A stretch of 37,420 nt of DNA, from NCBI GenBank assembly GCA_002269645.1, contig NIVC01003656.1:1-37420 (forward strand). Direction: 5' to 3'. Below, piece after piece: positions 6,853-9,205 of the stretch. Position 1 is the stretch's first letter. Every line of letters begins with the position of its first letter. Origin of the DNA: Macrostomum lignano. Lineage: Eukaryota. The notes under the pieces were generated by a model. The model did no database searches. It was not told where the DNA came from and saw nothing but the letters and a program-made list of their open reading frames with translations. The position numbers and the translations under genes are program-made.

Positions 6853-7407
6853 CTGCGCGCATATTCGATTGAGAATTGGTTAAGGAATCATTTCGAATAC
6901 GGGTTCCGCTTTGCTCGGAACCTGCGACTCCACAGGTGTTTCGTTGCCCGCCCGGCCCAACTCCCCCATCGAGACAAAGCCGCAATTAGCTGCTAATACG
7001 GTAATAGGAGACACAGAGATGCCCAGGTAAACAAAACTATATTAGCCAGTGGAAACTAGCTAAGAGGGTAGTGCATTTTGTGTTGCTTATAGTAGAGAAG
7101 TTGGTTACAGACCCGTTGATGCCTCTGTTTACATCCGCGCCTGGCGGAGTTGCGGGGAGGAAGAAAAGGAATTTTCGGAGGAAGCTGAATCTGGGAGAAG
7201 TGACTTGGGGCACCCGAAGCTGGGCCCAGCTGGTGGGGGACTCCGGTGGCCCATGCAGTGTAAACAGTGATGTCAGGCCGACTGGAACAAGGATTGGAAT
7301 GTCAGAGATTAACAACCAGAAGCTGGCGGGTTGAACGGCTGGGCTGGGAGGTGCCCTGGAGACCCAAGACTCTGTGACCCGGGACTTGGCCGCCTGTTGT
7401 ACTGTCG

Positions 7408-7935
7408 AGATAGATAGATAGATAGATAGATAGATAGATAGATAGATAGATAGATAGATAGATAGATAGATAGATAGATAGATAGATAGATAGATAGATA
7501 GATAGATAGATAGATAGATAGATAGATAGATAGATAGATAGATAGATAGATAGATAGATAGATAGATAGATAGATAGATAGATAGATAGATAGATAGATA
7601 GATAGATAGATAGATAGATAGATAGATAGATAGATAGATAGATAGATAGATAGATAGATAGATAGATAGATAGATAGATAGATAGATAGATAGATAGATA
7701 GATAGATAGATAGATAGATAGATAGATAGATAGATAGATAGATAGATAGATAGATAGATAGATAGATAGATAGATAGATAGATAGATAGATAGATAGATA
7801 GATAGATAGATAGATAGATAGATAGATAGATAGATAGATAGATAGATAGAGATAGATGGGTAGGTAGGTAGGTAGGTAGGTAGGTAGGTAGGTAGGTAGG
7901 TAGGTAGGTAGGTAGGTAGGTAGGTGGTAGGTAGG
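7408..7935. repeat. (AGAT)n (7408-7857) followed by (GGTA)n compound microsatellite
   Basis: Direct reading; about 110 AGAT units then about 19 GGTA units. Confidence 0.98.
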
Positions 7936-8956
7936 TTGGTTGGTAGAGTACATGTAGATCGGTAGGTAAATAAGCAGACAGTGTGAGATTGACACAAAAG
8001 AACTCAGGCAGACAAGAAGCAGAAAGCGGGTGCTCTCGACTTTTTCCTGCCGCGCCTCTTCTTTTCTGCCCCGTCACGAACCCAAAAACGCATTTTCTGG
8101 CCTTCAGTCAGCTTTCTTCATTGTTCCCCCCAGTTTCCTTCTGTTTCCTTCTTCCGGGCAAAGGCTAAAGAAACACAAATTATGGAGCAGCTTTTTGAAA
8201 GCAAAATGAGGGCCCCGGTTTTTCTTTGCCCGACCGCCGTTCCCGCACCCTCTGACGAGCAGGCAGCCTGCAGCAGCCGCCGACTTCCGCTAGAACTGAA
8301 GTGCCAGTTCTGTCATTTTCTTTGTCTTTCGCTGTCCCACTTGGAGCGCGGGCCATTGACTTTGAACTGTACAGCTGGGCATTTCCAGCCCTTCTAAAAC
8401 TCCTATGGCCTCCCATACATAGAGACGGGCCTCGCGATAGCAAAGTGAACAGCATTTCGGAGCTGTCGTAGAATTCTTTATGGGCCTCTCAGGTTTCTCG
8501 AAGGAGCAGGCGGGCCACTACTGAGGTGTCGAGTTCGATGACTTGCTGCTCCCCACGCATCCCCAGGGGAGCCCGGCGGTCGAGCAGTTTAAAACCCAAT
8601 CCAAGCAATTTCTTCGAAGAATTCTGGCACAGGATTCCTGGAGACCAGCCGCTGGAATCAGATATTCATGGGGGCGGGTGGGGGGGGAGAAGACTCGAGC
8701 TGTTCGATGCCCCATCAATTTTAGATTCAGGAGAGTCTCGAAGTGGGAATTCCTGCGGCCTGCGCGTAAGAGATGGGCAGAGCCGAGAAATGTCATCAAG
8801 GAGTGCGCGGCTAATTTTCTTGCTTGGGTTGCTGGGTTGGATTGCCTGTGTCTCCTAGGAGAAGGGGGCACAGATGGAAGCGAATGGGGCTGATGCATCT
8901 TCCAGTCTTGAAGGAATTTGTTTAGAAAAGAAACAAAAATAGCGCATGCCAAATTC

Positions 8957-9166
8957 GAAACGGCGCATCTCATTCTTGAAACGGCGCATCTCATTCTTGA
9001 AACAGCGCATCTCATTCTTGAAACAGCGCATCTCATTCTTGAAACAGCGCATCTCATTCTTGAAACGGCGCATCTCATTCTTGAAACAGCGCATCTCATT
9101 CTTGAAACGGCGCATCTCATTCTTGAAACGGCGCATCTCATTCTTGAAACGGCGCATCTCATATTC
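8957..9166. repeat. 21-bp minisatellite GAAAC(G/A)GCGCATCTCATTCTT x10
   Basis: Ten near-perfect units starting about 40 nt inside pros intron 2. Confidence 0.97.
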
Positions 9167-9205
9167 AAAACAGCGCCTGCGAAAAAATTTTTTCGAAAAG
9201 AATAC

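Follow-up and report, generated by a model that had tools for sequence, protein, structure and literature searches.

Which of the two spliceosomes removes the intron that lies directly upstream of the Homeo-prospero domain in a prospero/PROX homeobox gene of Macrostomum lignano? The gene is encoded on the minus strand of a contig of which 37,420 nucleotides were analyzed (the window), and its phase-0 GT-AG intron carries signals that resemble those of the minor (U12-type) spliceosome. The initial annotation had described it as a minor-spliceosome intron gating production of the homeodomain. What is observed directly are the features of the sequence, its orthology and how it differs from functional orthologs. 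From these we infer the acting spliceosome: we lean towards the major (U2-type) spliceosome removing the intron mainly or wholly today, which would make the U12-like letters relics. The coordinates of all features are compiled in Table 1, in which a slash marks a splice junction, as in the text.

Table 1. Features of the intron upstream of the Homeo-prospero domain and of its flanking exons (positions in the window).
Feature	Position	Strand	Basis
Upstream coding exon (VTDTRLSPR...GGPFECLAQ), 102 codons, ends CAG	9206..9511	minus	translation, ortholog motif
5' splice site cag/GTATTCTTT: U12 GT-subtype donor, C>T at +5 (9201), U1-friendly exon-end AG (9207-9206)	9197..9208	minus	
Intron, 2353 nt, phase 0, GT-AG	6853..9205	minus	
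21-bp tandem array, about 11 copies, begins ~30 nt into the intron	8942..9176	minus	
(TATC)n/(AGAT)n microsatellite in the intron, then (TACC)n run to about 7960	7408..7923	minus	
Exact U12 branch-site consensus TTCCTTAAC, presumed branch A 6880; also fits U2 consensus yUnAy	6879..6887	minus	
Spacer from branch motif to AG, ~50% pyrimidine, no internal AG/AC	6855..6878	minus	
3' splice site AG (gcgcgcAG/ACC)	6853..6854	minus	
Downstream exon, start of Homeo-prospero domain (...WFSNFR); next intron GTGAGC, phase 2	6698..6852	minus	

The 9206^6852 junction was placed by homology. The upstream exon ends in ...GAGTGTCTGGCGCAG and the intron in ...GCGCGCAG, and the downstream exon opens in phase 0 with ACC ACG ACG CTG ACG CCA ATC CAC (TTTLTPIH). 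The predicted spliced product contains the full Homeo-prospero domain (PF05044, E 5.9e-80), the profile beginning 2 residues past the junction, and in a neighbour-joining tree this domain falls among lophotrochozoans on a long branch. Using the C-terminal 263 aa as query against a collection of 5.8 billion proteins, the best identity was 79% over the Homeo-prospero domain and no protein of the same species was found; the N-terminal 592 aa gave zero matches at E<=1e-3 in the same collection. The VTDTRLSPR motif of the upstream exon is kept in orthologs, and the exon end F-E-C-x3 aligns with the F/Y-D/E-G-x3-5 that precedes the U12 donor in Solemya, Capitella and the transcripts P0002 and P0005. 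A wrong gene model, in which the true junction would lie elsewhere (an unrecognised micro-exon or another donor, for instance) and the donor motif would be no splice site, is in our view very improbable. The end of the upstream exon is poorly conserved, and the exon reading frame runs on through 117 open codons of the intron (ORF 8855-9574), which leaves some room for such a model. However, the frame is open because the 21-bp (7-codon) tandem array, most likely a passenger minisatellite, keeps it, and it contains only two phase-0 GT sites, the alternative one (atg/GTGCTG, 9253) scoring poorly. Moreover, the exon end aligns with its orthologs as described, and the donor is identical to that of Capitella (GTATCCTTTTC) from +1 to +11 save +5 (10/11 intron positions). 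Since the branch motif contains an in-frame TAA, upstream in-frame acceptors are excluded as well.

A detailed comparison with U12-type signals revealed a mixed picture. The window donor agrees with the GT-AG U12 consensus /GTATCCTTT, which has C at +5 and +6, at 8/9 positions, with T at +5, and it lacks the +5 G of U2 donors, as does the GTAAAT donor of the same gene. The branch-site box TCCTTRAY is present exactly (9/9 consensus) and is closer to consensus than in many functional annelid orthologs. A distinct polypyrimidine tract is missing, as is typical for U12 introns: over the final 30 nt, pyrimidine runs reach at most 5 and the pyrimidine fraction is 0.57, versus 7-11 and 0.63-0.77 in the three other introns of the gene. 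The branch motif is followed by 26 nt, which puts the final intron base 27 nt away from the presumed branch A, and neither AG nor AC occurs in between before the terminal AG. The donor with its C>T change, the exact branch motif, the missing tract and phase 0 had all been noted in the initial annotation, and each of these observations holds. The exon-terminal AG (cag/GT), which proved more diagnostic than any other feature, was not mentioned there; GT-AG U12 introns are expected to lack AG at positions -2/-1 of the exon (PMC10853781).

An ordinary U2 intron with coincidental U12-like motifs is an explanation that we regard as effectively refuted. Each motif alone can arise by chance, and TCCTTRAY occurs 7 times in the window where 5.8 are expected. 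However, TTCCTTAAC, expected 0.46 times in about 75 kb (both strands of the window), is found as a single copy, its chance of falling into a 35-nt zone before one acceptor is roughly 2e-4, and an 8-mer with at most one mismatch from RTATCCTT is expected at about 8e-4 per position; the pair is therefore no chance match. Both motifs are at the right places (joint chance about 1e-7), and canonical U12 signals are found at the identical position in about 60 orthologous loci. On the minus strand of 6853-9205 there is no canonical U12 donor besides the intron's own, and no accepted U12 intron with GTATTCTT was found in one published supplement file. An Rfam scan of the 37-kb window, which is too small to bear on the snRNA content of the genome, detected no minor snRNA.

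The comparison set comprised about 60 orthologous loci with 22 identified donors and 55 distinct U12-type 3' ends. An intron at the same position and in phase 0, directly before T[ST]TLTP, is present in Solemya, Octopus, Capitella, Lamellibrachia and Bugula and at 55 distinct metagenomic 3' ends; in vertebrate PROX1 it is one codon off, and in a nematode it is absent. Ahead of T[ST]TLTP[MI]HLRKAK, Solemya, Lamellibrachia and a vertebrate PROX1 have the AT-AC form ATATCCTTT...TTCCTTAAC(9-14 nt)AC, and AC-ending 3' ends were found in Octopus and many annelid-like contigs. Capitella and Bugula have the canonical GT-AG U12 form GTATCCTTT...CCTTAAC(10-12 nt)AG, and the 9-mer of the window is also present in Solemya, Octopus, Bugula and vertebrate PROX1. 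The donors of an AG-ending annelid-like paralog group were not recovered; a conserved ~700-bp block upstream in this group is non-coding. The Dendroctonus contig contains only the last two exons, and the insect twintron is considered on the basis of the literature and of a protein read-through 'ISF', which corresponds to ATATCCTTT, in Armadillidium P0013. The intron is AT-AC in fly and human (PMC2831892). Position and phase match those in the five invertebrate genera named above, in a vertebrate and in dozens of metagenomic annelid-like loci, and support the earlier proposal that the intron is an ortholog of the ancient prospero/PROX1 minor intron. The proposed change of termini is likewise supported: AT-AC is the ancestral, widespread form, and the window intron has GT-AG. 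This switch is not special to the organism of the window, as Capitella and Bugula share it with canonical U12 signals.

What sets the window intron apart from its functional orthologs are the +5 base, the exon end and the branch distance. The dinucleotide at +5/+6 is CC in 22/22 ortholog donors, whereas the window has T at +5; the exon ends of the GT-AG orthologs are atc/ (Capitella) and caa/ (Bugula), whereas the window has cag/. The branch A lies 27 nt from the 3' splice site, compared with 10-19 nt in the 55 orthologous 3' ends (10-19 nt in 37 AC-ending, 11-16 nt in 17 AG-ending and 10 nt in 1 AA-ending), which bears out the initial remark on an unusually long gap, and the optimum U12 distance is 11-13 nt (PMC3584512). 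None of the validated human GU-AG U12 introns has AG at -2/-1, and adding AG converts the site to U2 type (PMC10853781). In line with this, human AG/GU introns with U12-like motifs are U2-spliced (PMC10853781, PMC11347168), and 'minor-like' introns that combine A-2G-1 with phase 0 and longer branch distances are unresponsive to minor-spliceosome inhibition and form a transitional class during conversion (PMC11347168). Large-scale minor-to-major conversion is known from an annelid (PMC10639083). The AG/GU and branch-distance rules were established in human cells and model species, and the organism of the window may not follow them.

Predicted snRNA pairing points in the same direction. U1 pairing of the window donor amounts to -7.2 kcal/mol, compared with -6.9 to -9.6 for the three ordinary donors of the gene and -1.5 (Capitella) and -3.4 kcal/mol (Bugula) for ortholog donors, and CAG/GTA forms six contiguous pairs with U1, as expected of the U1-complementary GT-AG donor of a major intron. 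Predicted U11 pairing is halved (-2.6 vs -5.4) and U6atac pairing is -4.7 vs -6.8. At the 3' end, a U2-type intron has yUnAy 18-40 nt from the AG and a pyrimidine tract; UUAAC and the 27 nt fit, and the tract is weak. A spacer hairpin that would shorten the effective branch-to-AG distance was rejected, as only a 4-bp stem is possible (-0.9 kcal/mol, weaker than in shuffles), and a 9-bp inverted repeat flanks the branch box with no significant fold (z -1.3). Alignments of the 3' end to the loci L009 (tgcgcgcac/) and L077/L084 (ccattctta[ac]/) scored alike (30 and 29 vs a shuffle maximum of 21.5) and so favour neither derivation of the 16-17-nt spacer insertion.

The intron descends directly from the U12-type intron found just before the Homeo-prospero domain across bilaterian prospero/PROX genes, and has the GT-AG form in the lineage of the window. 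Since then, the exon end has become CAG, creating an AG/GU donor, C has changed to U at intron +5, and the stretch from the branch motif to the 3' AG has grown by about 16-17 nt, to 27 nt and not 10-19. Together, these changes weaken predicted U11/U6atac pairing and abolish the tight U12 branch-to-3' splice site spacing, and at the same time provide six contiguous U1 base pairs and a U2-typical branch distance. U1 would recognize CAG/GUA, and the former U12 branch box, whose CCUUAAC fits yUnAy, would serve U2 as a strong branch site offsetting the weak pyrimidine tract. UAUUCUUU, UUCCUUAAC and the missing tract would be inherited relics. With its 8/9 donor, exact branch box, CAG and U12 orthologs, the intron matches the 'minor-like' description of weakened minor-type motifs, A-2G-1 and minor-intron orthologs, and it is best read as 'minor-like' and caught in minor-to-major conversion; this match is qualitative, at the level of motifs, whereas the class itself was delimited with PWM scores across 263 annotated genomes. 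The earlier wording 'part-way to U2 conversion' is apt. The claim of a still minor intron gating homeodomain production is unsupported, because human AG/GU introns with U12-like motifs are U2-spliced; AG/GT, +5 T and the 27-nt spacer each point to the major spliceosome.

Several features count against the major spliceosome: there is no real pyrimidine tract, unlike in the three clear U2 introns of the gene, the donor is without +5 G, the U12 branch box is perfect (9/9), and +5 U permits G·U wobble with U11 and U6atac. We are nevertheless doubtful that a substantial share of the intron is still removed by the minor spliceosome, whether by itself or competing with the major one, despite AG/GU, +5 U and the 27-nt spacing. 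One version of this, which we rate as rather unlikely, is an intermediate mechanism, with U1/U2 and U11/U12 competing for the same splice sites and both spliceosomes taking appreciable shares; minor-spliceosome activity could then affect the rate of splicing and not the protein sequence. The predicted U1 pairing of -7.2 kcal/mol stands beside what is left of the U12 donor (8/9) and an exact U12 branch box that includes the CC dinucleotide, which is linked to the use of minor-type branch points (Olthof et al., 2024, PMC11347168), and a small set of natural sites served by both machineries has been reported (Olthof et al., 2024, PMC11347168; Kwon et al., 2023, PMC10853781). However, such sites are described as rare, A-2G-1 introns are mostly unresponsive to minor-spliceosome inhibition, and the spacing is beyond that of all functional orthologs. 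U12, if engaged, might also choose a nearer non-AG site such as CAA/ at +11, resulting in a 16-nt frame shift.

The other version, a genuine U12-dependent GT-AG intron whose slow removal by the minor spliceosome limits the output of homeodomain-containing protein, appears still less probable to us. It agrees with the firm U12-intron ancestry, the exact branch consensus, the missing pyrimidine tract, the wobble-compatible +5 C>U change and a spacer that offers no AG or AC as a nearer competing 3' site. Against it stands AG at -2/-1, which validated GU-AG U12 introns lack and which converts them in experiments, together with the invariant +5/+6 CC of the 22 orthologous donors and a spacing of 27 nt vs 10-19 nt. 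In addition, predicted pairing with U11 drops by half, that with U1 is on a par with the U2 donors of the gene, and phase 0 is the phase thought likeliest to convert. If the minor spliceosome does keep a substantial share, the accepted sequence limits of U12 splicing would widen, and the intron would parallel the insect prospero twintron at a single site, with the spliceosome that acts governing how fast homeodomain protein is made and not what its sequence is.

The locus is useful for teaching and testing minor-to-major conversion, a known kind of transition, but reveals no new mechanism. According to the literature, just one other minor intron is likewise retained in all insects and vertebrates examined, which makes the prospero/PROX1 intron a reference case for the claim that selection holds some minor introns. 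In the window its U12 ancestry is still legible, alongside exactly those changes that recent experiments identify as switching introns to the major spliceosome. Together with the orthologs, this gives a stepwise natural series at a single position. The intron is AT-AC in molluscs, siboglinids and vertebrates, a canonical U12 intron with GT-AG termini in Capitella and Bugula, and degenerate GT-AG in the window, and a nematode lacks it.

Among the closest known systems is the conserved AT-AC U12-type intron of the same gene family (Drosophila pros intron 2, human PROX1; PMC2831892, PMC3291851), with which the window shares the phase-0 position before the Homeo-prospero domain, the branch box and a T-rich tail after the donor core. 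Unlike this intron, the window has GT-AG and not AT-AC termini, T and not C at +5 and an exon-terminal AG, and the branch-to-3' splice site distance is 27 nt vs 10-15 nt. The GT-AG version of Capitella teleta and Bugula neritina has the termini, the position, the donor GTAT.CTTT(T), CCTTAAC and the missing pyrimidine tract in common with the window, but is fully canonical U12 with +5 C, non-AG exon ends and 11-13 nt spacing. Sub-consensus minor motifs together with A-2G-1, phase 0, a long branch distance and true-minor orthologs are shared with 'minor-like' introns (PMC11347168; for the AG/GU class switch PMC10853781). Minor-derived minor-like introns have been argued to gain A-2G-1 only seldom, as these bases are coding (Olthof et al., 2024); the exon end in the window is a poorly conserved stretch. 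The insect prospero twintron, a U2 intron nested in a U12 intron (PMC3564746, PMC3291851), occupies the same position, and in both cases the two spliceosomes could potentially reach one intron. A nested twintron was rejected for the window, given the in-frame TAA in the branch box, a spacer without AG and a poor phase-0 GT donor as the only other one. Unlike in insects, there is no second nested splice-site pair and no good alternative donor, and as the TAA also blocks an upstream acceptor, no L/S protein isoforms are possible in the gene of the window.

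The prospero gene lies on the minus strand, and its last five coding exons could be reconstructed. The spliced C-terminal 263 residues include the whole Homeo-prospero domain (PF05044, E 5.9e-80, residues 105-257), which groups with lophotrochozoans and over which the closest match of a protein search is 79% identical; the candidate-intron junction lies two residues ahead of the domain start. As no transcript of the same species was found in the searched collections, the 9206^6852 junction rests on homology. The starting codon position of the downstream exon is exactly that of the orthologous exons, and any other in-frame acceptor is excluded because there is an in-frame TAA within the branch box and the spacer from there to the acceptor is free of AG. 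The open upstream frame contains only two phase-0 GT sites, the second of which (9253) is poor, and the last residues of the upstream exon, PFECLAQ/, line up with ...FDGTPM/, ...FDGHHMHV/, ...YDGQHIQM/ and ...YEGHPI/ of relatives.

Exons, candidate intron and orthologous positions (slashes mark splice junctions)
Feature	Position	Strand	Boundaries	Remark
Coding exon	...-10251	minus		ends KKKRTK
Coding exon	9511-9206	minus		directly upstream of candidate intron
Candidate intron	9205-6853	minus	cag/GTATTCTTTTCG ... TGATTCCTTAACCAATTCTCAATCGAATATGCGCGCAG/ACC	2353 nt, phase 0
Coding exon	6852-6698	minus		directly downstream of candidate intron
Coding exon	3125-2981	minus
Last coding exon	2678-2493	minus		ends at stop codon
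Solemya velum	orthologous position		atg/ATATCCTTTTTC ... TTCCTTAACggacaccAC/	AT-AC form
Octopus vulgaris	orthologous position		3' end TTCCTTAACtgtcactAC/	AT-AC form
Lamellibrachia	orthologous position		ctc/ATATCCTTTCTA ... CCTTGACagtacccAC/	AT-AC form
Vertebrate PROX1	orthologous position		gcg/ATATCCTTTACG ... TTCCTTAACtaatttcatcctAC/	AT-AC form
Capitella teleta	orthologous position		atc/GTATCCTTTTCT ... CCTTAACccgtgtgctcAG/	canonical U12, GT-AG subtype
Bugula neritina	orthologous position		caa/GTATCCTTTACA ... TTCCTTAACttatgaatAG/	canonical U12, GT-AG subtype
Steinernema (nematode)	orthologous position			no intron, coding sequence unbroken

The N-terminal 592 residues (10251-12030, minus) abound in runs of Asp/Glu, Gln and Pro and have no homolog at E<=1e-3 in a collection of 5.8 billion proteins; the KKKRTKVTDTR motif at the end of this part is conserved across phyla. 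A 739-nt GT-AG intron at 9512-10250 (minus) interrupts KKKRTK/VTDTRLSPR, a stretch that is coded without a break in each of the eight other taxa or loci compared (Solemya, Capitella, Lamellibrachia, Bugula, Steinernema and the orthologous loci L009, L084 and L062). With the hexamer AG/GTGA at both ends (ctaAG/GTGAgc ... cgcAG/GTGAcg), it looks like a lineage-specific gain with a short direct repeat. The non-coding DNA of the window has an unusually large share of tandem repeats, among them a (TAAC)n array that spans 5.2 kb (14575-19841; about 1317 copies) and dozens of further micro- and minisatellites (48 rows in TRF over 37 kb), and coding exons reach 65-72% G+C. Long coiled-coil-like open frames rich in Ala/Glu/Arg/Gln at 30277-36050 (minus; e.g. 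32731-34017, 428 aa) point to a second gene, and a Pfam search of these frames gave no significant match.

For comparison, the genomic loci of named orthologs were fetched and metagenome contigs were scanned with the homeodomain-exon peptide. U12 forms occupy the same position in Solemya, Octopus, Lamellibrachia and vertebrate PROX1 (all AT-AC, as in the published fly and human introns; PMC2831892 Table 2) and in Capitella and Bugula (both GT-AG), and the 80 metagenomic loci, which look like mostly annelid host DNA, hold many versions that end in AC or AG and one that ends in AA. Because U12 forms occur at this site across the compared taxa and metagenomic loci, the orthology with the ancient minor intron proposed in the initial annotation is firm. 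The proposed GT-AG in place of the AT-AC form is likewise borne out, and subtype switching at this site also happened elsewhere in lophotrochozoans. Minor splicing is absent from nematodes (PMC3584512).

Several side observations concern these loci. The intron of L077 (1122-1181) ends in AA (CTCCTTAACcattcttAA/ACC), possibly a non-canonical U12 3' terminus, and that of its close relative L084 ends in AC. The AG-ending group L052-L087 shares a ~700-bp block, 65-78% conserved between contigs, about 300-1000 nt ahead of the homeodomain exon. No reading frame runs consistently through the block, in which TGACGTCA-like motifs recur; it could be a conserved regulatory element within the intron or an alternative promoter. 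Up to 5 kb upstream, this group showed no canonical U12 donor. Many deposited prospero proteins (P0004, P0012, P0015, P0020, P0022 and others) are 153-155 aa long and begin exactly at the homeodomain exon, and the Solemya gene model (L001 19520-19552) reads on across the branch box (PFLNGHH = ccaTTCCTTAACggacaccac). Evidently, gene predictors fail at the AT-AC intron, and prospero is therefore widely mis-annotated.

On re-reading, all sequence statements of the initial annotation on the candidate intron proved correct. The three other introns of the gene look ordinary major-type, with donors GTGAGC, GTGAGC and GTAAAT and pyrimidine runs of 7-11 nt ahead of CAG; the longest run in the candidate is 5 nt. 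TTCCTTAAC occurs once in the window (both strands) versus 0.46 expected, and 8-mers that differ from RTATCCTT at no more than one base are expected at ~8e-4 per position. Donor and branch motif both correctly placed in one intron have a chance of roughly 1e-7, which rules out coincidence; the motifs therefore reflect ancestry.

From every functional ortholog, the candidate differs in three changes that promote conversion. All 22 identified ortholog donors, which are phylogenetically non-independent, have C at +5 and +6, whereas the window has T at +5, its only difference from the Capitella donor over +1 to +11. The branch A lies 27 nt from the last intron base, versus 10-19 nt in 37 orthologs that end in AC, 11-16 nt in 17 that end in AG and 10 nt in the one that ends in AA (distinct, phylogenetically non-independent sequences), and the published U12 optimum is 11-13 nt (PMC3584512); the gap is thus indeed unusually long. 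Finally, the upstream exons of the GT-AG orthologs Capitella and Bugula end in atc and caa, whereas that of the window ends in cag, giving AG/GU. Duplex energies predicted with human snRNA 5' sequences agree with these differences: U1 pairing is -7.2 kcal/mol in the window, -6.9 to -9.6 at the three ordinary donors, -1.5 in Capitella and -3.4 in Bugula, and pairing in the window versus C at +5 is -2.6 versus -5.4 for U11 and -4.7 versus -6.8 for U6atac.

A 9-bp inverted repeat, CGTATTCGA / TCGAATATG (6893-6901 and 6860-6868, minus), brackets the branch box with its 3' arm inside the extra spacer, which may partly be an inverted copy of the sequence immediately 5' of the box; at -11.9 kcal/mol, the predicted hairpin is not significantly more stable than shuffled sequences (z -1.3). 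Eleven copies of a partly purine-rich 21-bp unit (AAGAATGAGATGCGCYGTTTC; 8942-9176, minus), starting ~30 nt after the donor, keep the exon frame open through 117 codons of the intron. A purine-rich intronic enhancer is located near the 5' sites of the fly twintron; at the candidate intron, no pair of alternative sites like that of a twintron was found.

We lean towards a minor-like intron that descends from the U12 intron of prospero and that the major spliceosome would now splice out in the main. U1 would pair with CAG/GUA at the donor, U2 would take the old U12 branch box, which conforms to yUnAy as well, at a branch distance typical for U2 introns, and the strong branch site together with the CAG/A acceptor could offset the weak pyrimidine tract. 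Real dual use by both spliceosomes seems rather unlikely and continued dependence on the minor spliceosome improbable, but both keep some plausibility through the branch box, which is perfect, the absence of a pyrimidine tract, a +5 U that still allows wobble pairing and the derivation of the experimental rules from human cells. There, AG at -2/-1 occurs in none of the validated GU-AG U12 introns, predicted U12 introns with AG/GU were concluded to be misclassified U2 introns, and one substitution making AG turns a U12 site to U2 type (Kwon et al., 2023; PMC10853781). Minor-like introns, defined as the node of transition from minor to major introns and back, were unresponsive to minor-spliceosome inhibition when they had A-2G-1, a longer branch distance and phase 0, and CC in the branch box was correlated with minor-type branch-point use (Olthof et al., 2024; PMC11347168). 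The earlier suggestion of an intron part-way to U2 conversion is in line with the +5 T, the 27-nt spacing and AG/GU; for the supposed gating of homeodomain production, we see no support for a role beyond that of any obligatory intron.

Phase-0 minor introns have been proposed to convert preferentially because a -1 G is easily acquired (Moyer et al., 2020; PMC7367187), and the leech Helobdella has lost about 80% of its minor introns, chiefly by conversion (Larue and Roy, 2023; PMC10639083). A minor intron part-way through conversion is a kind of object already well described, and Capitella and Bugula already have the GT-AG subtype at the prospero site. The new element is one further member of this kind, at a site that is frequently cited as conserved universally; its three changes in favor of conversion stand out against a dense ortholog set.
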